Shown here: positions 6,880 to 62,710 of the stretch, one piece after another
How positions within the stretch are numbered: position 1 is the stretch's first letter
Layout: every line of letters starts with the position of its first letter
Origin: Mytilus californianus
Taxonomy: Eukaryota
Assembly: GCF_021869535.1 (NCBI RefSeq)
Contig: NW_026262696.1
Coordinates: 1,612,001 to 1,676,000 of the forward strand
Direction: 5' to 3'
Length of the DNA: 64,000 nucleotides
The notes under the pieces: generated by a model
Databases searched by the model: none
Told to the model about the DNA's origin: nothing
The model's input: the letters and a program-made list of their open reading frames with translations, nothing else
Made by a program: the position numbers and the translations under genes

Positions 6880-8431
6880 CCAGTCGATTGGACAATACTG
6901 TATAAAGAAACAAATTTCCTGACCATTTATCACCCACAAAAACATCTTTTAAAGGAAGAGAACAGTATTTTACAAATATAGAAACACAAAGAAAAGAATG
7001 ACTGGCGATTTCTATATTATCATAGCGGAAGTAGTAATTATAATTATACAAGTTAACATGTAGATCAGTTTAGACATTTATTTTATTTCTATTCAATTTG
7101 GTATATCGGTGAAACCTTAAAATTACTTTTATGTCTACAATCGTGAATAAGACACAAAAAAAAGTAAAAAAATATAATTTTTATTTTTATGCACGCATTT
7201 TCCCGCCGTTTAGCCTTATCGTACATGTACTCCGATAGTTTTACTGTGAAATTTCAAATTACATATAATTTGATATTTTTCTTTGCAATTACACGAGATC
7301 ATTCGATCTTACAACCAAAAATGAAAACTATATTTTCATTTCATAGACACAATTAAAAAGTACTTGAGCTTCACAAAAAAGGAAAAAGAAACACTCTTTA
7401 GTGATGAACATTTCAGTATAGCGGATGATGTTAAGAAATATAACGAAAAGGAAAGGTACTAGGTGTATATTAATGAAACAGCACCCAGTTATGATAAACT
7501 CACGAAGTTCCACGAGATGTGTATATAGTTTTGAATTAAGTACCATACGTAAGGCTGTGCAAAGCCCGGAATCTAGAAGAGCTAAACATATTGTATATTG
7601 ATAGTGTTTTCTATGAATATTAACTTTACACAATAAATTAAACAAAGACTATAAAAGGTCTACAATGAGCACCAAATTATTTAAAGAAAAAAAGCTACTA
7701 AGATATAGACGGATAAACATACCAACGAGGGCCATGTGCCGTAAAAGATACGAAAAACATGACTATATAAATTTGTTTTTTGAGCGTTAACATACCTTCC
7801 TTTTTTTTTTTTTTTTTTTTTTATCTCAATCGGCAGTATAACAAAGAGTACAGAAAAGACAGTTAAACCATAAAAATTAGTGCCGAAATTTTTTTAATGA
7901 TGATGTTACATACTACAACTGAAGTAAAACTTTAGTTCGGATATAAAAGAAAAACAAAGGATACGGGATATCCATCCATGACACAAAATCAGTACATGCA
8001 CAGCAAAAAAACACACAAAAAGCAAAGAAACAGCGCTTTTATTGCTGTTCTTCATCTCAAAGTCACAGTGAGGACTTCATCACGGCGCAAAAAAAAACAA
8101 CTCTCACCTCACTGCAAGTTTAAGACGGCCCCTATAACCGGCTTGAGCGGAATTCTTTGCAAAAACAATTTGGATAGACCTTGTAAGATGCAACACCACC
8201 TAATCGGACCAGGTAAAAAAAGAACATATAGCCTGTTTTCTCCCCAGGCAGGTTCCATTTTACACACATTATTCACACGATAACATCAAAATCTCTGCAG
8301 TGTTTGGATAAACACAACATCGTCTACTACATGAAAATGTAATGTTACCTTACCGTAAGTTTTCGTCACGGTAAGGAAGTCAAAATCGAAAAGTGTGGTA
8401 AAATATTTCTGGTGTAACTCTATCAAACATG

Positions 8432-8590
8432 TTAAAAGCATCCCTTTGCTTATAATTCGTCTGTTGGAAAAAATCTACGCAGATGAAAATATCACGTGAT
8501 ACAAATATAATAGTTGAAATGTATTAAAAGCATCCCTTTGCTTAATTCGCCTGTTTGAAAAACTAGGCAGATGAAAATGTCACGTGATAC
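8432..8590 (+). repeat. Two-copy tandem duplication of about 90 bp, each copy ending in palindromic TCACGTGA
   Basis: ttaaaagcatccctttgctt...gcagatgaaaat.tcacgtgatac occurs twice. Confidence 0.8.
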
Positions 8591-8810
8591 CAATTGTTCA
8601 ACCTCTTCATTAAAACACAAATATCAAATATCTCAGAACTCTCCTATGCTTAAACCTATCGTTTCTAAGAATAGTCCAATGAAAGACAACTTATGTAACT
8701 TCATAATGAAAAAGTGTATCATCAGAATAAAATGATAGACACTAATTAATACGAACCTTTGATACCATATAACTCATCTAAAAATATATCACATTTATTC
8801 TGTATAAAAA

Positions 8811-9069
8811 TAAGAAGATGTGGTATGATTGCAAATGAGACAACTACCTATTAAAGTTTAAATGGCGAAGATAAATGCAATTGTAGGTCACTGTACGGCC
8901 TTCGACAATGGGAAAAACCCATACCGTATAGTCAGCTATAAGAGGCCTCGACATGATAATTGTGAAACAATTAAAACGAGAAAACTAACGGTCTAATTTA
9001 TATCAAAACAATTTATGAAAAACAAATATGACCGACATGAACCAACCACAACCACTGAATTGCAGGCTG
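8811..9069 (+). repeat. Abundant interspersed repeat family A (aagatgtggtatgattgccaatgagacaact...)
   Basis: The same motif recurs at about 9650(-), 12200(-), 20550(+), 21296(+), 39945(-), 45190(-), 51690(-) and 51965(+). I recognise it as a high-copy mussel repeat. Confidence 0.8.
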
Positions 9070-9221
9070 TGTCTGATTATATCGTAATACCCGTTTCTGT
9101 TTTCACTTTTCTATTCTTTTAAAAGATGTTGGTCATTCTTTAGTTCCTTCTATAAAAGAAAAAAATACCTCACAGTCTATAATTAGTAGATTATGCATTT
9201 ATCAATAATCTTAAGCAGGTT

Positions 9222-9365
9222 CCTATTCAAAAAGTAAAATCACAAAAATACTGAACTCCGAGGAAAATTCAAAACGGAAAGTCCCTAATCAAATGGCAAA
9301 ATCAAATGATAAAACACATCAAACGAATGGACAACAACTGTCATATTCCTGACTTGGTACAGGTA
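9222..9365 (+). repeat. Interspersed repeat (aaaagtaaaatcacaaaaatactgaactccgagg...cctgacttggtacagg)
   Basis: Its 3-prime cctgacttgg.acagg motif is shared with 20775 and 49445; recognised as a common mussel repeat. Confidence 0.5.
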
Positions 9366-9379
9366 CAAACCCAGCTCAG

Positions 9380-9675
9380 GCCGTTAGTTTTCTGTTTAAA
9401 AAATCTTCACATTTTGTCATCCAGAGAATAACTTGCTATACAGTATGGTTTTTGCTCATTACTGAAGGCCGTAAGATGGATTGACAATCATACTACATCT
9501 CCTTATGTTCGTTTTATTGTCATCCCGAGGCCTTTTATAGCTTTCTAAATGGTATGGGTTTTGCTCATTGCTGAATGCCATAAGATGATTTGAAATTGTT
9601 CAGCATTTATGTTTTGGTCTTTAATGGATAGTTGTTATATTGGCAATCATAATTACCACATCTTTTTATTTTTAT
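9380..9675 (-). repeat. Family A copies inverted relative to 8811-9069
   Basis: Reverse-complement similarity (ggccgttagttttc, atggg.tttgctcattg, ttggcaatcat..ccacatct). Confidence 0.7.
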
Positions 9676-10189
9676 ATTAATCTGCAGAATAAAATCCTGG
9701 ACATTAATTACTAAAAAATTACCCGAATGAGAAATAATAAAAATGGGTAAGTCGTATTTTGCTCTAAATTTATAAAGCCGAAGGTCATTTACAATTTACA
9801 AGTCCGGACTGTGAAATGTTTTTTTCATGTGAACATATGCGATAAGGCTTATTCAATTAACTTCATCACGGAGACATGCCTTATGCAATACCACTAACAA
9901 GATTACACCGAATTCTCCTTAAAATCAGGGGAAGATCATCGTATCGTGCTCGCAACGCCAGTGATAATGTTTTCTGAAAGACTTAAATTGATATTTATTA
10001 ATTCTTTGCTAAGAAAACACCATTTAATTATCATATCCGAGACTTGTACTGTAGGCTCCGGATCGGAATGATGTATCAGGGGCGAATTTTTTTCAACGAA
10101 CCAAAAATAAATGTGCAGGCCAGCATGTAAAAAATCTGTTAATTCAGGCACATATTAGTGTTTATTCATATCTTATTATATGATATAGC

Positions 10190-10245
10190 CGTGAATATGC
10201 ATGAAATATTTGCCACTGGATGTTAAGTCACAACCAATAAATAAG
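10190..10245 (+). mobile_element. SINE/LINE 3-prime tail fragment
   Basis: atatgcatgaaatatttgccactgga.gttaag..caa; same tail at 15700-15752, 25445-25505 and 46700-46768. Confidence 0.7.
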
Positions 10246-10574
10246 TTGATTGAATATTCCATAAAAATAACTGGAATATTTATTACTTCTAGAAAAACAC
10301 AAGCTATCCATGATCGTTAAAAAGACCCGAAAAATTCCAATACATGTATGTGAAAGACTTATACACGAGGGTCTTCATGGGGGCTTACATATATATTTTT
10401 TAAAAATAGAATAATGGGTATACATTAGAGAATAAAGAATGACTGGGTGCTAAAATATAAACAATAACTTTTTTTGTACTTTTCTGTAACCTGTTGTTTG
10501 TCTCTTCTTCTTTCGGCCATGTTGTTGCCTGTCGTTCTTGGACCTACATTACTGTGGTATTTTCTCCATTTCAA

Positions 10575-12668: not shown

Positions 12669-12670
<2 letters not shown>

Positions 12671-12704
<34 letters not shown>
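12671..12704. repeat. (AT)17 microsatellite
   Basis: Direct reading. Confidence 0.95.
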
Positions 12705-12710
<6 letters not shown>

Positions 12711-13278
12711 TTCCCTCATTTTAGCGACGCTTTTTATACGCATCATATTCAATCACAAAACAAAATTTACATAGATGCGATTCAAATGAAAGAACGAAAA
12801 TGAGAAAAACAAAAAAAATCACACTAATGTGAAATTTAAATCAATAAACATTTTAATAGTAACTTTGAATCCTATAGATGCAGTGTCGAGGGATTTGATG
12901 CATTACGTTATTTGACATTGATTGCTTCGTCGTCTTCCTCCCATTCTTCTTCTCATTCATTACAGTTAAATATATACTTTTTAAATGTTCTATTGACAAG
13001 TACATGTAAACATTTGTACGATTTATCTTTCCGTGTTCTTATGCATAACAGACTGAGCTTTTTATTCTGGGTTGGTTTAATTTTGCCATACATTCTTATT
13101 TTATTAATGATGCATGCTGTTTCCCAAGAAAATTTTGTTCTGAAAGTAGAAATCCAAATGATATTTACGCATGATAATGTATGAAAATACGGGGAATTGT
13201 ACCACAAGTAATGCAATTCCGCTAAGAAGCCCATTCGTTTTTAAATGGTCACCGAAAAATGTCGCTAGCAAAATAGAA

Positions 13279-16484: not shown

Positions 16485-16733
16485 GACATTAGAAAATCAG
16501 TATTATGCGTTTAATTGACATTAATAAATCGGTACATGTATTATGCGTTTAATTGACATTAGAAAATCGGTATTATACGTGTAATTGACATTAGTAAATC
16601 GGTACATGTATTATGCGTTTAATTGACATTAGAAAATCGGTATTATGCGTTTAATTGACATTAAAAAATCGGTACATGTATTATGCGTTTGATTGACATT
16701 AGAAAATCGGTATTATGCGTTTAAATGACATTA
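16485..16733 (+). repeat. Minisatellite of alternating 32- and 38-bp units (70-bp higher-order repeat, about 3.5 copies)
   Basis: gacattagaaaatcggtattatgcgtttaatt alternates with a copy carrying an extra 6 bp (TA becomes TACATGTA). Confidence 0.9.
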
Positions 16734-19746: not shown

Positions 19747-20864
19747 CAAAACAAACAATAGATTCGGGTACAGATTAAGACAGCAATGACCCCCCCCCCC
19801 CCCACACACACACACACACCCACCCTTCACCCCCTAGTTGATCAATAAAAAAATGTTTGGCATTATATTGAAGAAAACATGTTTGATTCGCTACGCCGGT
19901 GCTATCTTTACCATTGCTGACAATTACGTCCCCCTGTCTGGAATCCTAGGTCCGCATAAGACCATACATATCATAGATAACTTGGTAAGGAATATTGCAT
20001 GAAAACGGCAACCAATTTCGTTAACACTACATTTCAATTTCCAAAGGCAAACAGAACGGAAGAGAAAGACTAGAGTAAACTAGATAGAGGTTAACTGTAA
20101 AAATATAAGAGCATCATATTTTCTTGATACGATTTAAAACATTGACCTTTGGTCTGTATAATAACCAGGAAAACTACAGTAAGTCATGACAGACATATGA
20201 ACTAAAAGCAGTCCAATATTATAGCCCTAGCCAATATAGGCATGACTATACCATGGTTTTGCAAGACATTTTCTATCTATAGTACATGTAACGGTAAGGA
20301 TGTTGAATGAACGGCAAAACATATCCACCATGAATATTTTAATAATTGACATAAAGAAATAAAAAGCCAGGTTTGGTTCCAATCACTGGTTTCAGAGGAT
20401 AACAGTTTGTGGGAGGATAATGATAAAGAACGCTAAAAGTTACCATTTAATTTCATCGATTTTGTCCAGATGACTTTATATTCCACGAGAATAACTGCAG
20501 CTCTTTTTCAGAGAAATATAACTTTAACAAAATAAAAATAAAGAACTGTCAGGAAATTGCCAATGAGGCAAAACACATATCCCCCCAGAAACTAAAAGAC
20601 GAGGATTAAACAATTACAGGTCAGACCTCAACAACGAGGAAACACCATACTGTATCGTAAGCTATAAAAAGCCCCGACATGACAAAATCTGAAACATTTC
20701 AAAATAGAAAACCAATAACAAGATTTACGATAAAAAACAATAAAACGGAAAAAACAGGACAGACAGCAACAGGCTCTTGACCTGGGACAGGTACATACAA
20801 AATAGGCCTGGGTAAAACATGTTTGCAAGCGCTAAAATCTCCTGTAACCTTGGCATAACAAAGT

Positions 20865-21105
20865 TGCATAATAGAGAGGCGAAAGATACCCAATGGACAT
20901 TCAAATTATAAGTCGAAAATAAACTGACAACGCCGTTCCTACAAAAGAAAAAGACCAACAAACAAACAATAGTACACAAAACACAACATAGAAAACTAAA
21001 GACTGAGCAACACGAACCCCACCAAAAACTGGGGTGATCTCAGGTGCTCCGGAAAGGTAAGCAGATCCTGCTCCACATGTGGCATCCGTCGTGTTGCTCA
21101 TGTTA
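20865..21105 (+). repeat. Interspersed repeat family B (gagaggcgaaagatacc...tgctccggaaaggtaagcagatcctgctccacatgtggc)
   Basis: Homologous copies at 21625-21830 (-) and 21958-22200 (+). Confidence 0.8.
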
Positions 21106-21418
21106 GTATACTTCTTTTTTCATGTGGTATTACGATCACGTGATTCAAATGGTATTCCATGTACCTGAAGCCTTGTTTCTATTTTCAAGTATATGGACGC
21201 TATTTTTCTATTTATATATATACTGTCGGTCAAAATTAAAAATCTTAAAAAATACAATGTAAAATACACAGAAAGAACATTGAATATAAAAATAAGGAGA
21301 TGTGGTATGATTGCCAATGAGACAACTATCCGCCAAAGTGCAAATGTAGTGGAAGTCCATTTCCATATTACACTATTTATATAATTTATGGAATATATAA
21401 ATTAAAGCCTTTCACTCA

Positions 21419-21515
21419 GTCAATACGTTATATATGAACCTGTTAGAACATATCGACACTCGGACTTCGTCCTCGGTCAATATAATCTGAATAGGTCCAT
21501 ATATAACGCATTGAC
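21419..21515. mobile_element. Small foldback MITE
   Basis: Arms of about 40 bp, gtcaatacgttatatatgaacct.. / ..aggtccatatataacgcattgac, around a short central cggacttcgtcc hairpin. Confidence 0.7.
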
Positions 21516-21624
21516 CTCGTCAAACGTCCATAAATGAAAAATATATAATAGGCTGATATGATTTAAGATCTCATATGTAGCTATAACAAACATTTGCAAA
21601 TCAATTGCATATATAGTAAGGTCA

Positions 21625-21830
21625 ACTACTGCTTACCCTTCCGGAGCACCTTAGATCACCCCCAGTTTTTGGTGGGGTTCGTGTTGCTCATTCGTAAGTT
21701 TTCTATGTTGTGTTTTGTGTACTATTATTTGTCTGTTGGTCTTTTTCCTTTTTTTAGCAATGTCGTTGTAAGTTTTTTTTTCGACTTATGAGTTTGAATG
21801 TACCTCTGGTATCTTTCGCCTCTCTTCTAC
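21625..21830 (-). repeat. Family B, inverted copy
   Basis: Reverse complement aligns with 20865-21065. Confidence 0.8.
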
Positions 21831-22988: not shown

Positions 22989-24272
22989 TCTATACTACTA
23001 AAATAACGAGGTCCAATTTGTTATCCGGTATGGGGTAAAAACGACGAATCCAAGAATTCAACTTTATTTATAACTAATATATAGGACAATGGTGTTGGTT
23101 TAGAATTTCACCATTCCAGGCCCTTTTGTTTTCCACATAATTAATATTACCAATAATTAACAAGTTCTGGGTCGAATCCGATACCGATACCAATAGTATA
23201 TGTCACCTGTTACCTAACCTATTACCTAATCTGTACGTTCCGCATCTGTCAGATGCACTACCAAACGGTGTATTTGGGATTTGATATATGCACGGATCAT
23301 AATCACACATGGATTTCGTCATTATACAGGGATTGACACTACTAAGTTCAATCATTGTCACATGTAGTTTACGGTTATAGTATTTTAATCAGCATGACTT
23401 TATACATGTAAGGTGACAATACGAATACTAAAATACAGACTAAAAATAAGGTGTACATGTAGGTACTTTCCAATTTGTTAGCCGGCATGAAGTGCATTTG
23501 TAAAAACATGGAATCAAAGAATTCAACTTCATATATAACTAATATAGGACAATGGTGTTGGTTAAAAAATTAAACCATTCCAGGCCCTTTTGTTTTCCAC
23601 ATAATTAATATTACCAATAATTAACAAGTTCTGGGTCGAATCCGATACCGATACCAATAGTATATGTCATCTGTTACCTATTACCTTATCTGTACGTTCC
23701 GCATCTGTCAGATGCACTACCAAACGGGGTATTTGGGATTTGATATATGCACGGATCATAATCACACATGGATTTCGTCATTGTACGGGGATTGACACTA
23801 CTAAGTTCAATCATTGTCACATGTAGTTTACGGTTATAGTATTTTAATCAGCATGACTTTATAAGGTGACAATACGAATACTAAATACGAATACTAAAAT
23901 ACAGACTAAAATAAGGTGTAGGTACTTTCCAATTTGTTAGTCGGCATGAAGTACATTTGTAAAAACATAGAATCAAAGAATTCAATTTTATATATAACTA
24001 ATATAGGACAATGGTGTTGGTTAAAAAGTTAAACCATTCCAGGCCCTTTTTGTTTTCCAAAAAAAATAATATTACCAATAGTTAATAAGTTCTGGGTCGA
24101 CGGGTTCAAATAGAAAGATTTTAAAAGCAGAGAACAAAGTGCAGCTTATAATCAACATGACTTTATCAAATGACAACACGAATACTAAAAATCCATGCTA
24201 TATAATAAGGCTTATATATAATTAGATACTTTAATTCTGTCATGGACCCGTGATGTCGCGGGTGTGGTCTAG
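22989..24272 (+). mobile_element. Non-autonomous Helitron with about 2.4 internal tandem copies of a roughly 460-bp unit
   Basis: 5-prime A|TC at 22988/22989. 3-prime hairpin acccgtga-tg-tcgcgggt (24246-24263), then CTAG|T (24269-24273). Unit anchor ggacaatggtgttgg at 23084, 23547 and 24006. Confidence 0.85.
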
Positions 24273-30431: not shown

Positions 30432-30823
30432 CTAAATGTGATTGTTTTTGTATTAAGTTAAACAAAATGTAGCTTCCTTTTTAAACGTAAGACATTGTTG
30501 CAATTAACAATTATCAAAGTATTTTTAATTTATCTTATTTTTTTGCTGGTTTTTAAATTGTTTAATGGATGTGTGTAATTAGTTATATGTTTTTTATGTT
30601 AATACTTTTGTTTCTCATCCCAAAGTGAAAAAAAAACCTTCACAAGTTCTTCCTGTTGTTTATAATTATACATTTCTGACTCGAGTGTGCTAACTTAAAG
30701 ATCAATTCCTTTATCAACGTATTTATGATATGGCAATAATATATAATGCAAAGAATACTGAATTTCAAGGACAAAATTAATCAATTTACATATACACATT
30801 ATACAGACAAATACTAGAAATTA

Positions 30824-31556
30824 TCTTACCTCCTATACATTTCTAGGAATATGATTGGTTAAAAGCAACCGCGTGGAGACCTTGTATATTTCATATTAGG
30901 TTTGTAGGCGGGGCTAATTTCAATACACAGTTAGTAGTGGTGTTACGTCCGTTTATAAAAACAAGACGGTGTTAAAGAAAAATCTGAAAGGTTTCAACAG
31001 ACGAAGAAATTGATGATAAACGATTGAAATAAATTCATAATACACATTTAAAGGTAACAAGTTGTTACTGTTGGCATTTGTTTTTGTATAGACAAATGGA
31101 AGTAGGTTCTTAATACTAAGTATTGAAGACTGAATCACTTTGATAGGTCACTAGTCTAAATACCACATGTTAAAATAGTCGGTAAGATAAATTCGTTACA
31201 AAGTGTGCTAATGACCTAATACGATATATATGGGGTCAGTAAATTCCATATATATTTTATTAGGTTACTAGCACACTATGTAACTAATACTAGTAATATG
31301 CCCTGAGCATGCCGAGGAAATTCAAGATGTATTATTGGTTACATAATGTGCTAGTGACCTAATACGATATATATGGGGCCAATAAAATCCATATGGAGTG
31401 AGAGCAAAGCCGTGTTGATTTTTATAAAGGGACGTAACAGCACTACTAACTGTGAAACTAAAATAAGCCCCGCCTACTAACCTAATATGAAATATACAGG
31501 TCTCCACGCGGTTGCTGTTAACCAATCATATTCCTAGAAATGTATAGGAGGTAAGA
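30824..31556. mobile_element. MITE with about 145-bp terminal inverted repeats and a TA target duplication
   Basis: TA|tcttacctcctatacatttctaggaatatg... mirrored by ...catattcctagaaatgtataggaggtaaga|TA. Internal 48-bp direct repeats at about 31202 and 31346. Confidence 0.85.
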
Positions 31557-32012
31557 TAAAATAGTATACATGTGTTCCTTCATCCAGATTTAAAGAGTTT
31601 CACACACTGCACACATAATAATATCACATTCAATTATTGTTTTAAGACCAATTTAAAAAGGATTTATCGTTCGACCTTGAGACCTGACATCTTATTTAAA
31701 AGGACATATAACCTTTTAAAAAAAAGTTGTGACCTAAGTGGGGTAACCTACTGGAGCCCCATTTGCATACAAAGGACGGTAGGTGAAACTTAACATCATC
31801 AAGAAAAGAGGATGACATGTTTGAATGTGATAATACATGCACAAAGATTTTCCGATGAGAAGAATATACACATAGTTACGCACCATATGTATCTTTTAAA
31901 AAAAGTTTTAGTAACATTCAATGTAATGTGAATTGCTAGAGTAATATTCCACATTGTATTCTTAAATCAATTATAGATACAGGTTATGTTTGCGGGAACT
32001 ATAATTCCATAC

Positions 32013-39879: not shown

Positions 39880-39985
39880 TATATTCATAATCCACGGTGA
39901 CCTATAGTTTTTAATTTCAGTGTCATTTAGTCTCTTGTGGAGAGTTGTCTCATTGGCAATCATACCACATCTTCTTATTTTATAT
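39880..39985 (-). repeat. Family A copy
   Basis: cggtgacctatagtt...gagagttgtctcattggcaatcataccacatctt. Confidence 0.8.
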
Positions 39986-43265: not shown

Positions 43266-43590
43266 CTTTGTGTGAACAATTTAATTATTTTATTTGTTTT
43301 ATAATGAATATACTTTATTCAAGCCATGCCAAAAATAAAATCCTTAGTATTGTTAGTATTGCAAAAAATAGTCCTTAGTATTTCTTAACTAAAATGCATG
43401 TGTTGTCGTGCTAAGCATACCCCCCCCCCCTTTTGTAATTCAACGTATCATAAAACATGAAGTTGGTATGACATTATCTGCTCAAACGTTAAAACTCATA
43501 ACTGGTGAGCTGCTGACAAAATATGAAGTCATTCTGTTCAGTAGTTTCTTAGAAAAGTGTGCCGGATATGTTTTATGTTCATTCGACATA

Positions 43591-43804
43591 CTGTGGATTC
43601 ATTTATTTTCGTGGATACATGTACCAATTTTCGTGGATTGAGGAAAACTTGGACTTTCGTGGATATTTGATTTCGTGGTTTTCCAAAAGTCTGCATATAT
43701 TCATAAAGAAAATTTGTAATTCGTGAACTATTTCAATTTGTGGTTTCCCTGTATCCACGAAAAACACTAAAATTGGTATCCAACGAATATAAATGAATCC
43801 ACAG
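43591..43804. mobile_element. 214-bp MITE with TA TSD and about 38-bp TIR (Tc1/mariner-type)
   Basis: TA|ctgtggattcatttat.. / ..ataaatgaatccacag|TA. The left TIR carries TACATGTA where the right TIR has TA. Confidence 0.85.
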
Positions 43805-44308
43805 TATCAAACTTTTTTTTTTAAATATCTGTAACCAGGAAGTATGTATTTGACAGATCCAAAAAAAATGCTCATAAAGTTCAAGCTGCTGGCCTAATAT
43901 GAAATCATGCTGTTTAGTAGTTTTTGAGAAAATTGTACCGAATTAAATCGTTAGACGAACAAACTCGACAGAGGAACGCACAGGCCAGAAAACATAAGAT
44001 CGCCTACAAAAACCAATATTATTATTTAAACTGATAATCTTATAAACAAGGGATATCAGTGGAGAACCTGTCACAGTTCTAACTTAGTGCTTGGAAATAT
44101 ATTTATGCTTTACTGTTTCATAGGATCGATAGTTTATTTCACTCTCATGTAAAATAGGTGAAAAAATCCCCCGTGCGTAAAGTTTGTAGTGAGCAGCAAC
44201 ACTGGTGTCAAAAAGGGCAAAATTATGGTACTTTGTGCGCAAAAAATTTATAGATTAAATCGCGAAAAAATCTACATTAACAGTATTTAGCTTTTACCAT
44301 GTACGTAC

Positions 44309-45210: not shown

Positions 45211-46123
45211 ATACCACATCTTCTTATATCTACTTAGTTTTTCTCTCAGTTTACATTAAGATATCGTTTAATGTTAAATTTTCTCAAACATCAATTACTC
45301 TTTCAACCCATCTCGGAATTATACGAAACTTGGACAGAAGCTTTTTATGATCAAACAACAGAGGAATTTCCAGAGGTTATTTGAAAAATAAGGGTTTCTG
45401 TATTTACTGATAAAAGGACCTTTTTCAGTAATTAACATAAAAATAGAGTCTTGGGTTATTTGTTTTAAGACCTATATAACTGTGTCAAACCTTTTCAGAA
45501 TTTTATGACCCTGTAGCAGAAGTTTTTTCTAGGATTAAGAGATATTCTCGGTGATAAACTTGTAAATATTTCTATTTAAATTCTGTTAGTTTTTTATCTA
45601 AAAGATGGACTTAACTTTTTGTAATTAACATGTAGTATATACATTCTGGGATAAGTGTTTTTTTTTTTACATTAATAACTTTATTAAACCTTCATGGGAT
45701 GTTACGAAACTTGGACAGAAGCTTGATCAAGATCAAGAAATACCATCTGAAGAAAATAATAAATGTTTTTTTATTCTGTCCGTAATTTACCAAAAAAGGA
45801 TGGTTTACTCTGGTAGCAGCAATCGCATTTGCAGACACACGTCACACAGGTTTCCACGGAATCCTTTACGAATTGTATAAATCTAACTACACCTTTTGGA
45901 TATACAAAAACCATCAAACGTCTTTTTCTGACTTATCAGAACTAACAAAAAATAGGGTTGAAATATAATGTGAACCTACATGTATGCATAGTAGTCTTCA
46001 TCTATTAATTTTTTATTCATTTTAAATGCAGTTGCATGATCCATTTCAAAACATGCACACTTATTCACCTTAACTCAAACACGAAAAATCAGTTAAGCTG
46101 ACAAACGAAATAAAATCAAGTAC

Positions 46124-46934
46124 CTTTATCTCCATCTGTTCCCTTATTTCCTGTCATTCCCTTATCTCCTTGTGTTCCTTTCATCCCAGTCATCCCTTTG
46201 TCCCCTTGTGTACCTTTTTCACCAGTCATTCCTTTATCTCCAAGTGTTCCCTTTTCACCCATTGCTCCTTTATCCCCGTCAGTTCCTTTATTTCCTGAAA
46301 ACCCTTTATCACCCTGTGTGCCTTTGTATCCTTTATCTCCTTGTGTTCCCTTTTCGCCTGTCCTTCCCTTGTCTCCTTGTGTTCCTTTCTGTCCAGTCAT
46401 TCCTTTATCTCCAAGAGTTCCCTTTTCGCCGGTCATTCCTTTATCTCCTTGTGTACCTTTCCCTCCAGTCATTCCTTTATCTCCCAGTGTCCCTTTCTCT
46501 CCTGTCGAGAGAGTGCCACGCTCTTTGCACGTTAAGAACCCTTGCAACAACTCTTTGAGGGGTCCGTAGGTGACCTGTTGCAAGGCTAAATTTCTGTCCC
46601 TATCCGATATACCCTCATTTCCCGTGGCACTCTAAATTTCTCCGACCACAATCCCTTAATCTATTACAGAACCTACCTATTGTATTTATTGTGAACTTGT
46701 TCTCGTCCTGAATATGCATGAAATATTTGCCACTGGACGTTAAGCAACCAACAATCAATCAATCAATCTCTCCTGTCATTCCTTTATCACCTTGTGTTCC
46801 TGTTTCTCCTTTGTCACCTGCTGTTCCTTTTTCTCCCGCCATTCCTTTGACACCTTTCATACCCTGCATTCCTTTCATACCCTTATATCCTGCTTCTCCC
46901 TGCATTCCTTTAACTCCTTTATCGCCTTGAGTTC
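46124..46934 (-). pseudogene. Collagen exon C2 (540 nt = 60 triplets once the insert and one TSD copy are removed), split by a SINE
   Basis: Acceptor ttgtaaatAG, donor GTACTT. Removing 46507-46777 restores Gly-X-Y. Read-through meets TGA at 46759-46761. Confidence 0.85.
46507..46768 (+). mobile_element. 5-prime-truncated SINE inserted in exon C2, 9-10-bp TSD (c)TCTCCTGTC, (CAAT)n tail
   Basis: TSD at 46498-46506 and 46769-46777. The tail is shared with three other copies in the window. No tRNA head. Confidence 0.9.
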
Positions 46935-47291
46935 CTATTTACAAATATAAATAAGATTATTTAGAAAGTACAATAATAAGACGCTGATAACATTACTCTT
47001 TGATATATATGTGTTTTACGATATATGGTATAAGTAAACATTTGTATACTAGTACATGTATATGGTTCTGTCCATTTCAATTTTTTATGTCAAAGCTTTT
47101 GTCTTATCTTTGTGGATAATTTTAGGTTCGACCGTATGTTCATTCAAACTGTCATATTTAAAAAAAAAATGTGAAATATTTAAACCGAAACTGTGTTTAT
47201 CGAACAGTTATGAAAAATATATAGGCAGTACCAAAAGGACAACCAAATATTAGGGACATATACTAAGGACAAATGTGTGTCCCCTTTTCAC

Positions 47292-47417
47292 CTTTATCTC
47301 CCTGAGTCCCCTTATCTCCCATCATTCCTTTGTCACCTTGAGTTCCCCTTTATCCTATCATTCCCTTGTCTCCTTGAGTTCCTTTAGAACCTGCTGTACC
47401 ATCCCCACCATCATTTC
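47292..47417 (-). pseudogene. Collagen exon C1 (126 nt = 14 triplets) with in-frame TAA
   Basis: GND-GGD-GTA-GSK-GTQ-GDK-GMI-G*R-GTQ... with stop at 47350-47352. AAG acceptor and GTGAAA donor are inferred from phase and multiple-of-9 length. Confidence 0.65.
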
Positions 47418-48554
47418 CTTTATACGTAAAGATTCATTAGATGTAATTAAACAAACTTGTCATAAGATATAAGTTATATTTACAAGGTATAAGTTAAATT
47501 TCAAATATATAAGTTAAATTTACAAGATAAACGTGATGTTTACAAGTTTTAAATAGTACCTAAATCAGAATATATTCCCGAAGATTGTTAAATTTAACAG
47601 GTTTTCACTATAACAATGGTGAGTTTTTTCTGTCTTATTTCATGTTTATGTGAAACGTTGCATTACAATCGATATGTAATCGTCTGATCAATAAAGGAGT
47701 AGATCCGCTAAGACCCCTTTTTGGCCCCAAAATATAGCATTTTTACAAATTTGTCAAAAATATAAACTTTTAACTATTTAATTAAAAGCAGAATACTTTT
47801 GTTACATACCTATGTTTTTTTTACAATACAATGCACATGCATCAGGTACTAGCATGATCATTAATTCATGCAAAATAACTGTAGTCTTCACAATTTTAGC
47901 ATTTGTGCTAATTTTTAGACGGCTTTGTCTAAAAGGGAAGTGACCGCACTTGTGGTCAGTCTTCATACTTATATATATGATGTATTTAATGATAATATAT
48001 AACATATATAAACTTAAGGTTACTTACATTTTAGACAAAAAACATCTGAAAAGTGACGTTTTGTGGCATATTTGATAGATTTTTCATATTTAAGCTTGAA
48101 TTTGAGCGTCTTTAATGACCAAATCAGTACAAATCTTTTACATAAAATAATTGAATCGACTGTAGTAGACTTTTAAGTGTTAAAAAAGGTTAAAAATCTT
48201 TCATCAGATGTACTTCAAATTCTAGGCCAAAAATAGCCCTAACCGGACCTTCTCCTTTGCCAATTGTGTTCTATTTCAAACGTCACATTTTGACTGCGTC
48301 TGGATTTGCATGGAAGATAATGTATTTTTTGTAGGAGATGGATAACCCTGCCAACACATCTGGTCCCGATCCTTTCAGCTTTTTGTCAGATGTTTGAGTT
48401 TTGTTTTTGTACTGTTGTTTTTTTCTATTCAATTTACATGTATAGTGCTATCATGAAATGTTCTTGCCTGTAATAAGTTTTGAAATACTGACATAGTACA
48501 CAGAGCTAATGGGTATTAACAAACACATTATCGTTAACATGTTTGATTTCGTAT

Positions 48555-49534
48555 AACAATAAGAGACTTGAAGCTCTAAAGAGCCTATGTCGCTCACCTA
48601 GGTCAATGTGCATCTTCAACAATGGACATTCTCAAACATTGTTGGTTAGAATAGAATTAACTCATGACAAAACAAAAATTTCTTGCATTGCTGGTAATTT
48701 TTCTGTTTACAGTTTCTCTCTATCTTCTTTTGAATTAGTTTAGCCCAAAACACAAAAAAGGTTGAAAATCGCCATTTAAGGGTAATTACTCCTATGCAGA
48801 GTCTACTATGGTTATCGGTAAAATTTTACACATTTATAGATCTTGCCTTGCTGATAATTTTTGCACTTAAAGTGTTTTATCTATCTTCTATAATTTTCAA
48901 GATATTAGGCAAAAACGCAAAAAGTAAAACTTGTCATTAAAGAGCAAGAACTCCAATAAAGAGTCGACTAACAATTTCTTCCATGTTAACTCATTAGTAG
49001 ATCTTAAATAGCTTATCATTATATTTTTTGCTATTTAAAGATAAAAGGCAAAATCACTAAAAATGGGCAAAGAGCAATAACTTCAACTAGAAGTCGACTG
49101 AAAGTTTCGACCATTACACTTATTCGTAGATCGGTAATGTTTGCTTATTTAAATTTATCTATCTGTTAAAGATGCAAAAACGCAAAACATTGGTAAAAAT
49201 TGTTATCAAAGGACAATAACTCCAATAAGGAGTCGTCGGACAATTTCAACTATGTTGACATATTTGTAGATCTTGTCTTACTGATCAGTTTGCTAAGTTT
49301 CTCTCTATGTATTAAAGTGTTATAGGCTGGCCCCTAAACAAATATATATACTAGTTCAGTGATAATGAACGCCATACTAAACTCCAAATTGTACACAAGA
49401 AACTAAAATTAAAAATAATACAAGACTAACAAAGGCTAGAGGCTCCTGACTTGGGACAGGCGTAATGTTAACTGAAGACGGACGACGGACGTCGAGTTAT
49501 GAGAAAAGCTCACTTGGCCCTTTAGTCTCACAAG
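48555..49534 (+). mobile_element. HINE-like element with degenerate internal units and a nested repeat fragment
   Basis: Start resembles 36365 (gctctaaagagcct.tgtcgctca). End gacggacgacggacg..gagaaaagctcacttggccc. Confidence 0.55.
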
Positions 49535-49587
49535 TAACAAAAATGCTTAAGTGCATTAGTGCAATTCTAAGTATCAATCATTGCCCA

Positions 49588-49790
49588 AGTGTAGATACAA
49601 GTAACGCACATCGCTTTAGTGTAGTTATAAGTGTCAAACATTGCTTTAGTGTATACGTAGTTATAATGCCAAACATCGCTTAAGTGTAGTTAAAAGTGTC
49701 AAACATATCTTTAGTGTAGTTATAAGTGTAAAATGTCGCTTTAGTGTAGTTATAAGAGTCAAACATCGTTTTAGTGTAGTAATAAGTATC
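49588..49790 (+). repeat. 30-bp minisatellite (atcgctttagtgtagttataagtgtcaaac), about 7 copies
   Basis: Direct reading. Confidence 0.85.
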
Positions 49791-49800
49791 CACATTTATC

Positions 49801-50743
49801 GGTATTGAAGAGCATGTACGAAACGTATATGAACTCAGCACCGGAGATTGCAATGAGACTTGACATGAAAATAAGGTTTCTGTGTTCTGTTTCCGGTTTC
49901 TTGTAAGTTTTGCATGTGAAAAAAACATGTTTTTTAAATAAGAAATTTGCATTTGAGGGGAATAGTTTTATTTGTGGATGCCACGTCAGCAATCAGGTCT
50001 TTTTCGTATTTTAAATCATAAAACGTATTTTTTCCATACCTTTCCAGTCATATATTGTCAAAATCAGCTTCGTAAGTATACATAAACTCACTATAACAAA
50101 CTTTTCTGATATTTCTTCATATATAATCAGAATTGTATTATTTTCGTTCCATACTACACAACACTAAATACTAAGTCGGGCATTGAATAGCATGTACAAA
50201 ACGTATATGAACTCTGTACCGGAGATTGCAATGAGAATTGACATGAAAGTAAGGTTTCTGTGTTCTGTTTCCGGTTACTTGTAAGTTTTGCATGTAAAAA
50301 AAACATGTTTTTTTAATTAGAAATTTGCATTTGAGTGGACTTGCGAAATTCAGTGGTTATTTTGTTAAAAATATATACATTCTATGCTGATTTGTAGTTT
50401 TGCTGAACAACATTATCGAACCAGAATGATTTTGATGTTTCAAACTGCCTTGCATTCTTATAACTTTGTGTTTCTGTCCTGGTTGGCTGGTAAGTTCGGT
50501 TAATTTTTTCTAACCAAAAAAAAATGGCATTATTTCGTAAATGAACTATATAATAAATCAGTGACAACGTGTTTAGTTTTATTTGTGGATGCCACGTCAG
50601 CAATCAGGTGGTTTTCGTATTTTAAATCATAAAACGTATTTTGCCATACCTTTCCAGTCATATATTGTCAAAATCAGCTTGGTAAATATACATAAACTCA
50701 CTATAACAAACCTTTCTGGCATTTCTTCATATATCATCAGAAT
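49801..50743 (+). repeat. Tandem duplication; copy 1 (49801-50133) lacks about 235 bp present in copy 2 (50180-50743)
   Basis: Both halves align at high identity; the extra segment is about 50338-50574. Confidence 0.85.
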
Positions 50744-50870
50744 TTTAAATTAAAGAAATTCCCATTTTATTCGTCACCAGCAAAATGCCCAAACATTTGT
50801 AGGGCCAACGATATGAGGATTTATACGAAGATATAAATTGAAATAACAATTAAAAATTATTTCATTTTAC

Positions 50871-50937
50871 CGTTAGTCCATATTCCATGTATACATGTAC
50901 ATGAAAACAGCAGAAAGGCTGCCGACTTCCACTCCAT
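50871..50937 (-). CDS. Candidate first coding exon: signal peptide MEWKSAAFLLFSCTCIHGIWTN(G)
   Basis: Acceptor catttgcctacAG (exon starts 50945), context aaccATGG, hydrophobic core, donor GTAAAA in phase 1 matching all collagen exons. Confidence 0.65.
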
Positions 50938-51276
50938 GGTTAGTCCTGTAGGCAAATGATTAGCTAGCTACATTAGAAGCGTAGTTATACAAAGCAAACC
51001 ATGTATTTTACAGTAACAGCTGAAATCATTTGCATAAAATCAATTTAATTTCTTAGGAACAAACGATATCATTAGTATATTTTGTTATCCTGATTCGAGT
51101 ATATAAAATAATACATTTGTCATCATTTAATTGTACATAAAGTAGAAAATCTATTTTTTTTTTTTTTTATTGTCGATTAAAAAAAAAAGGACACGTGGTA
51201 TGTGTCCATGAGACACTGGAAAGTAATAACTATAAAACAGACTTTGCTTTTATTGCTGTTCTTAATATTGAAAGTG

Positions 51277-51470
51277 AGCCTCGGGTGCCGAGTGGTCTAT
51301 TAGATTGTCTACAGTGAGCACTAGCCTATCAACACTGAGGTTGTAATTCGAACCTCGCTTGTGGCAAGGTACGTTCAACTTCGATTTTCGATCTTAATTG
51401 GCTAGGATTGCAAGTGTTCTTGCCGAATGTCTAGGGTTTTTGCCTAGTACTCCGTCATGATATAGCCAAG
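51277..51470 (+). mobile_element. Degenerate tRNA-derived SINE head and body
   Basis: A-box-like tgccgagtggtc, B-box-like ttcgaacc, and ggtttttgcctagtactccg resembling a conserved SINE body motif. Confidence 0.5.
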
Positions 51471-52189
51471 AAGGTTTGCTAAAAGGTCTTCAACAATGAA
51501 CTAAAAGTCGCATCTGAAAGCAATTAGTCCCTTGTCTCAACATTAGCACAATACTAATGACTAGTATTCTTTAGTAATCATTTTTTGGGGGCCTTTATAG
51601 CTTGCTGTTCGGTGTGAGCCAATGCTCCGTGTTGAAGGCCGTACCTTGAATTATAATGGTTTACTTTTATAAATTGTAACTTGGATGCAGAGTTGTCTCA
51701 TTGGCACTCATACCACATCTTCCTATATCTATTGGCTATTTATAGAAGATGAATTTCATTTCTTCTTCAATGGCTAAAGAAATTGATATGTAAGGATCAA
51801 TTACTTGTCTGGATTAATGAGTTGCACTCAAAAACATTATTTACAATATATTTTCAATCTAACAAAGTTTCAACAGGTACAAATTCTTAACATGGTTGAT
51901 GGAACTAAAGACAAGAGACTCATGGTGTAATGATTGTTGTAGTAAGATTTGTTGTATTTATAAAAAGATGTGGTATGATTGCCAATGAGAAAACTCTTCA
52001 CCAGTGACCAATTAACATAAAAGTTAACAACTACATGTATAGGTCACGGTATATATGTTATATATAATTCACGTTTTTTTACGCGCTATTTTCAAGGGGT
52101 TTTTTTTAAATAAAGTTACTGTATCATGTCTTTGAACGAATTAATGCAAAAGCTACATGTAAAACTGAGAACGTCTCCAATTAAATTCT

Positions 52190-52560
52190 ACCGTGGTAAT
52201 AAACTCATTAATAGATACCAGGATTGAAATTTTGTACGCCAGACGCTAGTTTCGTCTACAAAAGACTCATCAGTGACGCTCGAATAAAAAAAGATAGAAA
52301 GGCCATATAAAGTACAAAGTTGAAGAGCACTTGGGACCCAAAATGCCGAAAGGTTTTACCAAATACAGCTACATGTAACTAAGGTATCCTATTCCTGGGG
52401 TTGAAAATCCTTAGTATTATGAAAATTAAAAGTTTTATTAGCAGTTAATTTATGATTATGGCCATATCAATGATAATGCATGTCAAAACAGAAGTGCTGA
52501 CTACTGGGCTGGTGAAACACTCGGGGAGAAACCTCCATCAGCAGTGGTATCGACCCAGAA
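52190..52560 (-). mobile_element. Retrozyme-like repeat unit with a type I hammerhead
   Basis: Homologous to the 10575-11480 repeats; carries the best-preserved ribozyme core. Confidence 0.65.
52234..52284 (-). ncRNA. Putative type I hammerhead ribozyme
   Basis: The minus strand reads CUGAUGA-GUCU-uuugu-AGAC-GAAA-C(ua)GC-gucug-GC-GUA. Core intact, 4-bp stem II, bulged stem III, GUA cleavage triplet; stem I is weak. Confidence 0.6.
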
Positions 52561-54128: not shown

Positions 54129-54129
54129 C

Positions 54130-57719: not shown

Positions 57720-59214
57720 TCCCCCGGCAGAAAGAAAATTCCCAATGAATTTTTGCATATGTGGAATTCAGACCACATTCAAATAAAAATACATGATCAA
57801 TATTACCAATATATCTTTCTAACTTTCATAATATTCAAGATTCTCTATATTTCAATATATCTAAACGAACAAGTAACTGGTATGGATAACTTTGTGGAAT
57901 AAGCATCTTGTAACACATTGAGGAGTACTACATGTATAGAAAATATCTTGCTTGTCATAAACGTGACAGTTAATATAATATAAAATACTATGAAATCACC
58001 AGAGACCTTACTCTTATTTTGTAGATAAATGTTAAAAGTGATGAAATATACACACAGTCAAACAGTCTTACAAACATACACATATACAATATAAGACCAG
58101 CTCATAATAATCTCACGCACTCAGAATTTCTCATTAACCACTCACAGCAATACTACTTAGGTTATTTATGATTAACATTATTATAAAAGTCACTGACAGA
58201 TATTCATACAATCTCATTTGGTTATCTATGCCTTAAATTGTATTATTCAAATTTCCATGTTTCGGGGGTATTAAACTTATTTCATCAACAATCAACACTA
58301 TAGAAAAACAATGTTTAGTTCTCAAAATAAAGTGTAGTTTTCTTTATATTTATAAAGTTTTGACAATACGATTAAGTCTTTAACTAAATGAATTCTTGCA
58401 ACTTTCAACCGTACATTGTTATAACAAATTACATTCAAATACGATATACATAACTCCTTAATTCAAAATGGATAAGAAACAATAGGTTAATATAACCATG
58501 TAAATTATCTTACTACCTATTATATATTCAATAAATTTGCCTTTCAAAAACAATTTAGGGTAACTTCCTTTAAACTCTAATAAAAGTTTCATTTAAAAAA
58601 TAAACATGTTAATCAAACAAAATTATTCATGTTATCAATAATCAATACGTATAAAATATGAAATTCAATAATCATATTTAAGTAATCAAAATGTAAGTGA
58701 TGCCGGAATTATATAATAATAAAATCAATGCATTACTATACACAATATACTACAGCAATACACAATTAATGTCCGTACATGTCTGTTTCTTTTTCTTCTA
58801 TGGTCTTCATCTACGGACATCTTTAGCAGAAGTTGCAGTTTCCCGAATATCTTACTATTAGATAAATCTCACAAATACATTGTAAGTCTACGGAAGAATA
58901 TTAAGATACAGACGGCACTGACAATATCATGAAATAAAATCGTACAGATCCTGATGAATTCCTTATTTATGAGTCGATATTCCAAATCAAGAGAAATTTT
59001 ACGTTGTACATAGCTACTTTATTAAATAGTCATGAAATATCTCTCACAGACAAATAGTAACTTGTCAATATATATATACAGTCGTATTGCTTATGTACTC
59101 ATGTGATAAATCTAACGAGTATATAAATCGTGGACGCTAATTAGATGTTTTGACATTATTGCCATGATTATATGTTGACATAAAACAATCCACTGAATAA
59201 AGAAAATAAAATGT

Positions 59215-61000
59215 TTAAATTTGTGGCGGAGGTCGAGATTTAAATTTGGCCTCTGCTTTCGGTCCTAGCTGATTATCGTGAAGCCACATAGCGTGTTGGG
59301 TTGGTTCACCAACTATATGAGCAAGATACGATCTATTTCCGATTATAATTTTCTGTGCTAGAAATCTTTTAACTTTTAATTGCCTTGGAGACGTAGATTC
59401 GCTAGACACGTCAACTTCATTAAAGTTAATAAAATACTGATCTTTGAACCTAGCTGGTCATTTCTTAGTACGCTTTGGGCGAGACATGGCTTTACTATTT
59501 TCAACAAATAAAATATTGTCTGATTTGCGTGTATTATCAGAGTCGGAAATATTATTTGATAAATTGTCATAATTGGTGTTTGAGTTGTCATTCACATGCG
59601 TACTATCCTCGTCAAATGATATATGATCTTGCACTTCAACGTCGTCGAGTTTCGTAAGAACAGGGTCCATAAAATATTTTGACGGATTTGGTTTTCTTAC
59701 ATAAGCAGATTTCAGTCTATTGATATGCACTGGTTGTGATATTACTTTGTTCGTGTTTGGGTCCTTCAAAGTATACATATGAGGACTATTTACTGTTGAG
59801 ATCACATATGGACCGGCAACTTCATTCTTAAATTTTTGTCCTGATCCGGTTGGCTTTTTTAACAAATAAACATAGTAGTTTTCAAGAAATGAAATATTTG
59901 GTATTTTGTCCTTATTAGTTCGGTCATCATTTAAACTTTCGAATTTATAGAATTTTTCTCGACTTCAGTACGTATAATGTTTATCTTTTCACATTGCTGT
60001 TTGAGATACGTATGACAATCTTTAGGTAGAGACGAAAAGTCTGTGTCCTTAATATGCAATGACAACGGAAATTGCGGTCTTTTTCCATACACTATTTCAA
60101 AAGGCGAAAATCCAACACTTTGGTTTGAAGTATTGTTCATCGAAAATACTATTCCCGGTAATACATCCTCTCATGGTTTTCCTTTTAAAATAAACGGTGT
60201 TAGTCTTTCAGACAAAGTTCTGTGAGGTCTCTAACAAGCTCCCAAACAGTGCTGAGCGAAGCTGGGGGTATATTCCTGAATAATATCCAATAAGCGACAA
60301 ACTTCTCGGAAACATTTACCAATAAATTCCGATCCTTGATCACTAATGATAGTTCGACAAACTCCAAATTGCGTGACTAACTTAAAAAGAGCATGTCCGA
60401 CTGTTAACGGATCAGTGTTAGGCATCGGCTCTGCAAACATGTATTTACTAAATAAATCAATTGCAGTGAAAATATAAGAATTGCCACTACGAGAGACAGG
60501 GACGGGTCAATATTGAAGGTCCATTTCCCAAACTTCAAATGGTGCACACGGCGTAGGAAATGACGTATTGCAGCTTTAGTTTTTAGTGTGGTATTTTTCC
60601 TGCTTTGACATTCATGACATGAACGAATATAATCAGTTACTTTTTCACTCAAATTCGGAAAATAGTACTGTTCTTGGATTAAATCAAGAGTATTTTGTAT
60701 ACCGCAATGTCCGCCTAACGTTGAATCATGATGTAATTCAATTATTGTTTTAGTGAAATTTCGGGAACAACTAGCTGAAAATTATTCATTGTTTTTGAAC
60801 GGACTGATTTCCTATTTCGTGTATGAAATAATATGCCATTGATCAAATGAAAATTTGGTATTAATAAAAGAAGTCTGCGCGCTTCTCTCTGCAGTTTTGG
60901 TAGTTTGTTTCTTTCAAGATACTGAATCAACGGTCTGCAGTTTGTGTCATAGCCCTGCAATTCATATATCGAATCGACACTCAATCCCTTTTCCCGAAAA
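59215..61000 (-). pseudogene. Gypsy integrase, frameshifted
   Basis: HHCC zinc finger HDSTLGGH..CHEC (60610-60730), core IISDQGSEF, SPFEIVYGKRP, GPY motif (AGPYVI..VHINRLK), and a chromodomain-like C-terminus. Confidence 0.9.
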
Positions 61001-61599
61001 ATTTCAATCGATGTCAAAATATTTACATTTGAATCATTATCAACACCAGAAAGAGAGTCTCGGTTTTTGGTAGAATTGTTCGGGGTTTCATTTTCACTAG
61101 AATAAGTAACCTGCGTTTCATTAACGTCTGTACTTTGTTCAACTTTGTTCGAATCCTGTATATTATCACTTGCAGTGCTTTGATTAAATATTTTGTCTGG
61201 CTCTTCATTTTGAGAACTTTCAGTGCTTTGATTTAAAAATATTGCATCACATTGAGAAGTAGCACTATCAGTACTTTGATCAAATATTTGGTCCGATTTT
61301 TGTAAATTAGTCGACTGAGTGATTTGTTGATAAATTTTGTCAAACTGGTTCAACTGATCAGAAATCGACATTTGAGTATGTTTTGAATCAAAATCGGTCA
61401 GTTTATTCAAAGGTTCTGATTCTTTCACTACGTTATATTTCTTTCGAGGGTAAAGTTGTATCGTTTTTCGCGGTTTACGTTTCTTTGATACATGTATATA
61501 CTGTTGATCAATGTCTTCAGTGTCAGCATCATATTAATTTACAGTTTTATCAGAAATGTTAACATGGGCAGACTGGTGTACAGAAATTTTATCTAGTTG

Positions 61600-62710
61600 C
61601 CGCCCCGGGAGTCCTGCCCTGTGAACCCCGGGTTTACACACTGTGGACTCTTATGGCCCGCTTGTCCACAAATATGACAAATAAAAGAGAAATCTATATC
61701 TCCCTGTTCATTCCAGTTGCAGACACGTGCAAAGTGTCCAGGCGCTTGACATTTACGGCACAAATCACGATCAGATTGAGATAACTGACAAGTTTTGACA
61801 CGGCTTGTGTTAGACTGTTTATTTGTCCTTGTAATCCACTAACCACATCAGTTTTGAAATTGTTTAAATCTTTCATCGCAGCGGGTGTGTTAATGGCAGA
61901 TTTAGTAACAGCAGCTACGAGCGGTGCATCATCTTTTCGATAGCCGTAAGCTTCGCCCATTTTGGCAGCTGCTAGGCAATTTGCGCTATCATTATGGTGA
62001 CCTGCCCGAACAAAAAAGGCGAGTTGGTCAGGCAACCCCTTTATACATTTAATCAGTATTTCGTCATCACTTTTGTGCAAAATTGTTGCTTTTTCAAGTA
62101 GTTGAGCGTAAAAATCGTCAATTGATTGCCCTTTATAAAGTTTTAATGTTTCAAATATTTCATCTTCAAGAAGTATACATGTAGTTGGACTTCGAAAATC
62201 ATCATCAATATATTGCTTCTTGTAAACCTGTTCAAAAGTTTGCCATAATTGTTTATTGTCGGCTGGAAGAGTATTGAACCAAGTTAAAGCTGGGCCACAA
62301 AGGTGCAAATGGAAAGCGGCAATTTTTCTAGCATCCTCTTCCGGTAATATATGATGCAACACGGCATAAGACTCGAACTCACTCAAAAACTGATATGCAT
62401 TTTCATGTGGATATCCCCCAAATTTTCGACAATTTGCTAACTTTTCCATTTTGTGAAAAGAATTATATTTGAAATTTGATATGGAAGGTTGAAATTCGTC
62501 GTCAAGTGTTGAAGAAACTACGGTATTTGGCGTACTAGAAGAAGTGGTAAAATCTGAGGTTTGAAATATATCAAATGGTGTCCAGGCAGGGGTAGCTGGT
62601 GTCTCTATATTTGGCAAACTAAACGAAGTATCTAACTGTAGTGGAGAAGCCGGTGGTTGAAATAAATAGCCACTATCGGGTTCTATGTCGTCTGTTATTT
62701 GGATATACAA
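61600..62710 (-). pseudogene. Gypsy gag with two CCHC zinc knuckles after a frameshift
   Basis: ORF 61694-62710 (KFGG..FLSEFESY..ALTWFNTL..W..FEQ). CRKCQAPGHFARVC at 61719-61760 and CHICGQAGHKSPQC at 61638-61679. Confidence 0.88.

Follow-up and report, generated by a model that had tools for sequence, protein, structure and literature searches.

Herein we analyzed a window of 64,000 nucleotides from the mussel Mytilus californianus (NCBI RefSeq assembly GCF_021869535.1, contig NW_026262696.1, positions 1,612,001 to 1,676,000 of the forward strand), in which the 8-nucleotide palindrome TACATGTA is strongly over-represented and has been proposed, in an earlier note on this DNA, to be the footprint of excised Tc1/Tc3-type transposons. 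The window, which is free of N runs and syntenic with a Mytilus edulis locus at about 80% DNA identity, holds a long uncharacterized open reading frame (ORF) at its left end, an extended series of collagen-like ORFs in the middle and a degenerate Ty3-type long terminal repeat (LTR) retrotransposon on the right. TACATGTA is found in a retrotransposon ORF, in minisatellites, in one arm of a miniature inverted-repeat transposable element (MITE) and in gaps between collagen exons, settings that have no context in common.

An over-represented word in Mytilus DNA

The exact count of TACATGTA over the whole window is 20, and every one of the coordinates listed in the earlier note, which had claimed at least 20 copies, proved to be exact. 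About two copies are expected by chance: 100 dinucleotide-preserving shuffles of the window gave 1.8 (maximum 6) and Markov models of orders 0–3 gave 1.8–2.4; low-order k-mer bias thus fails to account for the excess. Models of order 5 and order 6 expect 8.2 and 12.8 copies, respectively, values that are inflated because these models already hold the 7-mers of TACATGTA itself. The control palindrome TACTAGTA was counted four times, matching the number previously given. Among 8-mers with at least eight copies, those with a higher observed/expected ratio than TACATGTA are either C homopolymer or apparent collagen Gly-X-Y words (attributed by their look, i.e., 9-bp Gly-X-Y repeats in minus-strand exons, and not each traced), and TACATGTA is the most over-represented dispersed 8-mer found in the window. 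The flanks of its copies all differ except at 16533, 16603 and 16673; these three copies share a 70-bp tandem unit and represent one amplified event, which leaves 18 independent sites (Table 1).

The excess is not peculiar to the window. Six further Mytilus loci (140 kb in total, from M. edulis, M. coruscus and M. galloprovincialis) were reached via the homologue of the gene for the long ORF and via relatives of the gag ORF at 61697–62758, and they contain 35 copies of TACATGTA against 4.5–6.5 expected (P about 5e-15), with 4–9 copies per locus where about one is expected and all six loci above expectation. When these loci are pooled with the window (204 kb), there are 55 copies versus 8.6 expected, an enrichment of 6.4-fold. 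In this pooled set, just two of the 16 palindromes that can be written TA-XY-X'Y'-TA are strongly enriched, namely TACATGTA and the microsatellite TATATATA; the other 14 palindromes reach at most 2.4-fold, and TACTAGTA is marginal (8 vs. 3.8 expected). One further locus from an ENA assembly has five copies against 0.7 expected, and a locus from the clam Mya arenaria has three against 1.1, which is not significant. Overall, TACATGTA is approximately 6–10 times too common in mussel DNA. The density of the excess is 0.15–0.25 per kb, or roughly one putative scar per 4–6 kb, which by extrapolation would give on the order of 10^5 scars if it held over an assumed genome of ~1.5 Gb. Variants of TACATGTA with one mismatch are mildly in excess as well (217 vs. 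175), which would roughly fit scars that decay on a time scale similar to that of within-genus divergence.

Six-base-pair gains at TA dinucleotides

Homologous copies that differ at TACATGTA sites were found as seven independent pairs, six within the window and one in a minisatellite of M. edulis. In each of them the partner copy reads exactly TA, the change is located at this dinucleotide, and a TA stands on either side of the extra bases. Five of the pairs had been described before, and all five do differ by exactly TA versus TACATGTA; the two added here are the site at 62176 and the M. edulis minisatellite, where TACATGTA is carried by two units (L007:19388 and L007:19417) and TA by the units next to them. 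Polarity is readable at four of the seven pairs (62176, 52032, 23403 and 43616), and wherever it can be read the six base pairs are gains rather than losses from an ancestral TACATGTA.

At 62176, the insertion adds two in-frame residues to the gag product (PT-TC-IL vs. PT-IL). Ten homologous gag proteins are without these two residues (they read PT followed by I or V), and DNA copies from M. coruscus (L002:10499–10640) and M. edulis (L003:10203–10338) show a plain TA and align with a clean gap of 6 bp. The site at 52032 belongs to a repeat family whose consensus at this position reads AACAAC-TA-TAGGTCAC (312–387 records per run in the runs X1, X2 and X9, covering two species labels), and a second window copy at 39897–39911 likewise carries TA. 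The six base pairs of 23403 are absent from unit 2 of the same tandem repeat and from two M. galloprovincialis copies (L004:19962–20064 and L004:20269–20315), while those of 43616 are absent from the right inverted repeat of the MITE and from an M. edulis copy (L003:3546–3599). The comparison of 23454 with unit 2 shows a clean gap of 6 bp but does not give polarity. In the 32-bp minisatellite, a single event was amplified as a 70-bp dimer, and plain-TA units stand at 16501, 16571, 16641 and 16711.

These gains are specific in two respects. When the 6-bp insertions in the Mytilus DNA that could be aligned were listed without bias, nine were non-tandem, and three of these nine are TA to TACATGTA. 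The control palindrome AACATGTT, with 11 copies in the window (e.g., 5821, 49924 and 50302) against about four expected (~2.5-fold), has 10 alignable sites, none of which carries a 6-bp indel; AACATGTT often lies within A/T runs and behaves as ordinary conserved or substituted sequence. A census of indels from self-alignment of the window was unusable, being swamped by the 9-bp collagen repeats.

Table 1 Copies of TACATGTA in the window, with their settings, partners and readings.
Position	Setting	Partner or comparison	Reading
62176–62183	gag ORF of degenerate Ty3-type retrotransposon		Polarized gain; clearest case
52032–52039	High-copy dispersed repeat	Plain TA in window, 39905–39906	Polarized gain
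23403–23410	Unit 1 of 459-bp tandem repeat	TA at 23862–23863 (unit 2)	Polarized gain
43616–43623	Left inverted repeat of 218-bp MITE (43589–43806)	TA at 43777–43778	Polarized gain
23454–23461	Unit 1 of 459-bp tandem repeat, 51 bp from 23403	TA at 23919–23920	Second putative scar in the unit
16533–16680	32-bp minisatellite unit	32- vs. 38-bp units	One TA to TACATGTA event; pair does not give polarity
50892–50899	In frame within short minus-strand ORF with ATG start, ending at GT (MEWKSAAFLLFSCTCIHGIWTN)		Ambiguous
7222–7229		Syntenic M. edulis position reads AACATGTT; substitutions at both ends	Not an indel
57929–57936		Word common to 91%-identical M. edulis repeat copy (L003:17010)	Family sequence, not a local event
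61489–61496	Inside retrotransposon	Word common to M. coruscus copy (L002:14169)	Not an indel
10341–10348		No alignable partner	
13001–13008		No alignable partner	
20283–20290		No alignable partner	
45977–45984	Between collagen-repeat exons	No alignable partner	
47053–47060		Crossed by contigs of two other individuals, neither 6 letters shorter overall	
48435–48442		TACATGTA present in contigs of two other individuals, same species label	
52154–52161	High-copy repeat region		
52370–52377		Ambiguous alignment to M. edulis copy	

The remaining copies are background, ambiguous or without a partner. Three of them (7222, 57929 and 61489) are not indels, which fits the two to four background copies expected by chance; for example, the M. 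edulis copy that corresponds to 61489 (L003:13496–13617) reads TACACGTG, through substitutions and with no indel. The copy at 50892 is of ambiguous origin because the adjoining CATGTA permits a plain tandem duplication, and it is also present in another individual (X2 record 15, 2 gap letters). The ORF in which it lies (50876–50941, minus strand) is situated upstream of the collagen ORFs and could be a signal-peptide exon. At 48435, the contigs of the other individuals have one gap letter (X1 record 3) and three gap letters (X2 record 11), so neither can lack 6 bp. Around 47053, X2 record 9 is five letters longer (46900–47735) and X1 record 1 is four letters shorter (46967–47280); with seven gap letters in total, the X2 contig may itself hold a 6-bp insertion. 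Since 46900–52500 is mostly high-copy repeat, and contigs of the two other species labels fall on repeats only, unique sites in this region are not polarizable. A candidate decayed scar at 58778 was set aside, as its alignment is too poor to call.

A proposed excision mechanism

Tc1/mariner elements insert at TA and, on excision, are cut at their tips on the 3' ends and 2–3 nucleotides inside on the 5' ends, after which the break is closed by end joining (PMC2170065, PMC6943129, PMC5481204). Their scars hold the terminal 2–4 nucleotides of the element between TA dinucleotides (PMC2170065, PMC6943129), and the TcMariner superfamily is among the richest of the DDE superfamilies in bivalves (PMC10294476). 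Against this background, we consider it likely that the excess of TACATGTA consists of scars left by the excision of a Tc1-type element at TA. The element would insert at TA and duplicate it, and its transposase would later make 3' cuts flush with the tips of the element and 5' cuts a few nucleotides farther in, leaving each broken flank with TA plus the first bases of the element as a 3' overhang. End joining would then seal TA-CA to TG-TA, by which TA would become TACATGTA (net +6 bp) with the element gone. Two geometries are predicted to give the same product: both overhangs may be kept after a 2-nucleotide stagger, on any element that ends in CA..TG, or the overhangs of a CAT..ATG-ended element may pair through AT after a 3-nucleotide stagger.

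Since the seven flank contexts are unrelated and the inserted CATG is nevertheless the same in all of them, it was not copied from nearby sequence. Because scars outlast the moves of an element, about one scar per 4–6 kb could accumulate over millions of years from just a few active copies. As neither an occupied allele nor a transposase was found, we infer Tc1-type excision, and a transposase as the maker of the breaks, from the form of the scars themselves. The Tc1/Tc3 footprint reading of the earlier note is thus supported, in that none of its three refuting conditions (a low-order k-mer bias, loss from an ancestral TACATGTA and the lack of a CA..TG family in the lineage) was borne out, with the amendment that not every copy is a scar (7222, 57929 and 61489 are not, and 50892 is ambiguous).

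Candidate elements in the lineage

TA-flanked inverted-repeat elements with CA..TG ends, which the earlier note had suggested looking for, do exist in Mytilus, having been found in M. coruscus, M. edulis and M. galloprovincialis, although all are classed by their ends and TA flanks alone and not by an encoded protein. The M. coruscus element (L002:18947–20437, 1.49 kb) has TA on both flanks and perfect CAGTGGAGATCACTTC termini, and it contains no ORF of at least 60 amino acids. Its subterminal regions, next to the CAGTG ends, are arrays of the palindromic TAGAACTGTTCTAG, possibly serving as repeated binding sites for a transposase. A foldback MITE of 271 bp, present in M. edulis and M. galloprovincialis, starts with TA followed by CAGCCGATT. 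The extra bases in the scars match the termini of such TA-flanked elements of the lineage, and no element was tied to a particular scar.

Several other candidates were rejected. The intervals 30836–31544 and 20973–21721 of the window both lie within longer inverted repeats, 47744–49268 has a match of just 12 nucleotides, and L007:1329–4775 is part of an inverted duplication of ~430 bp. Clusters of repeat ends in which TA is followed by CATATGAGG or CATTGG turned out to be repeat or insertion boundaries without inverted repeats. Two foldback-like inverted-repeat elements lie in the window, at 30821–31559 (~740 bp, longest arm pair 62 nucleotides) and 20873–21825 (~950 bp, longest arm pair 92 nucleotides), the latter with relatives in the syntenic M. 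edulis locus. The 218-bp MITE at 43589–43806 is TA-flanked with ends CTGTGG..CCACAG, from which excision with a 2-nucleotide stagger would leave TACTAGTA.

Weighing the explanations

A number of observations weigh against excision by a Tc1-type element. The window contains no solid TA-flanked CA..TG element, and Pfam scans revealed no Tc1/mariner transposase ORF in the window or in the eight loci fetched (184 kb), where the only hits were retrotransposon domains and one MULE domain. No site was found with an element in one copy and a scar in another, in reads compared over 5.6 kb that are mostly repeats. Nine sites of the window are partnerless and assigned by statistics only. The uniformity of the scar is unusual, given that the scars reported from rice and from human cells vary (PMC4423477, PMC6943129), and scar words that are shorter or of the Sleeping Beauty type (TACATA, TATGTA, TACAGTA and TACTGTA) are at chance level, with a background for TACATA and TATGTA near 56 that is enough to mask a small excess. 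Finally, the two scars that lie 51 bp apart in one repeat unit require either local hopping or coincidence.

Some of these points would equally suit a 6-bp insertion at TA that is real but has another maker, either a different superfamily with a 2-bp target duplication or an undescribed TA-specific break-and-repair process. Superfamilies listed in Repbase with such a duplication include ISL2EU and Mirage. The uniform scar, the missing transposase and occupied allele, and the protein-independent classification of the CA..TG elements all favor this explanation, which we nevertheless regard as improbable, given that a duplicated TA enclosing CA and TG is exactly what the chemistry of the Tc1 family predicts (PMC2170065, PMC6943129), that Tc1/mariner elements are abundant in bivalves (PMC10294476), and that the same CATG in seven different contexts speaks against local templating.

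Composition or selection, in the form of a k-mer bias (e.g., CpG decay feeding CATG) or of a selected palindromic motif bound by a protein, is a considerably weaker contender. ACATGT is enriched overall (60 vs. 26–34) and AACATGTT is moderately up, the word at 61489 differs from TACACGTG by substitutions, the ACATGT core at 7222 is retained in M. edulis, and TACATGTA is a promoter motif in oomycetes (PMC11134190). Yet about two copies are all that Markov models of order 3 or lower predict, clean 6-bp indels at TA were found in seven cases with four of them polarized gains, AACATGTT sites are never indels, and the TACATGTA sites are scattered over settings as different as a gag ORF and a MITE arm, so we judge this explanation very unlikely. 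An ancestral TACATGTA from which the TA copies arose by 6-bp deletion between the two TA repeats is scarcely credible, for although loss between 2-bp repeats is mechanically plausible and two pairs (the 16533 family and 23454) are without polarity, outgroup copies carry TA at 62176, 52032, 23403 and 43616, and such a process would strike any TA-NNNN-TA and deplete rather than enrich TACATGTA.

Other features of the window

The long ORF at the left end (121–5355, plus strand) is a single frame of 1744 residues with no Pfam match and with internal coding tandem repeats of 45, 54 and 75 bp. Its product is 66% identical to uncharacterized proteins of M. edulis and M. trossulus, and the M. edulis homologue is annotated with introns over 11.6 kb. 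Between 26100 and 47400, the minus strand has many ORFs with collagen triple-helix repeats (Pfam Collagen, E 3.5e-59), which look like exons of one or more collagen-like genes. Look-ups of exact products returned nothing, either for a collagen exon or for the homologue in M. trossulus. The Ty3-type retrotransposon (~57800–63100, minus strand) has gag, zinc knuckle, reverse transcriptase and integrase domains, and over parts of its length it matches a copy in M. coruscus at 97.5% identity. At 47650–49700 and 51575–52500, the summed contig depth ranges from hundreds to millions in all four runs, with peaks near 10^6–10^7, which marks these intervals as very high-copy dispersed repeats common to the genus (three species labels).

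Significance

Excision scars are usually studied locus by locus and are held to be too varied and too rare to shape the composition of a genome, and the mussel genus is known for extreme variation between individuals in sequence and gene content. As a wider proposal, which we hold tentatively and at somewhat less than even confidence, one or a few Tc1-like lineages may have left a uniform scar about every 4–6 kb across Mytilus. Excision would then be a leading source of 6-bp insertions, including in-frame coding insertions of two residues, and counting a single 8-mer would give a direct, datable measure of earlier cut-and-paste activity, also in DNA from which every element has gone. If this is true genome-wide, the mobility of DNA transposons that copy numbers miss could be counted and dated in a simple way, a very regular repair outcome would be indicated for the mussel germ line, and a class of 6-bp indels would be accounted for in a genus whose individuals vary so strongly. 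It would also provide a route to two-residue insertions in proteins, with one in the gag ORF and possibly a second in the signal-peptide-like exon.

Comparison with known systems

Several known systems come close to what is proposed here. In ISY100, a bacterial relative of Tc1/mariner, the 5' cuts are likewise made 2 nucleotides inside and the rejoined backbone retains the overhang between TAs (PMC2170065). Its donor junction is, in contrast, TATATA, because the complementary overhangs leave one 2-nucleotide copy, whereas CA and TG overhangs cannot pair, so that both would remain in the mussel scar. The Sleeping Beauty footprints TACAGTA and TACTGTA are also built from TA, the terminal bases of the element and TA, and arise by end joining (PMC6943129), but with CAG..CTG ends and cuts made 3 nucleotides in, this transposase leaves a scar of 5 additional bp. 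Its 7-mers occur at chance in mussel DNA (TACAGTA 22 vs. 19.9, TACTGTA 21 vs. 21.3). Between rice species, the scars of TA-targeting Mariner-type elements have been counted genome-wide and were judged a major source of small variation, although they are heterogeneous and were found by genome alignment, with no single over-represented word reported (PMC4423477).

The excision mechanism itself is textbook knowledge, while the density of scars is unreported: the searchable literature yielded no paper linking TACATGTA to excision, no report of an excess of this word and no report of Tc1-type scars in bivalves. A further close parallel is the nematode Caenorhabditis elegans, in which Tc1 and Tc3 end in CAGTG and TACATGTA is an excision product. 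There, as proposed for the mussel pairs, the TA is duplicated, its two copies come to enclose the terminal CA and TG of the element, and the net gain of 6 bp keeps the reading frame (cut geometry in PMC2170065). Descriptions of the worm scars concern single loci, and their form varies, whereas in mussels one uniform scar form would distort the 8-mer spectrum of several genomes.

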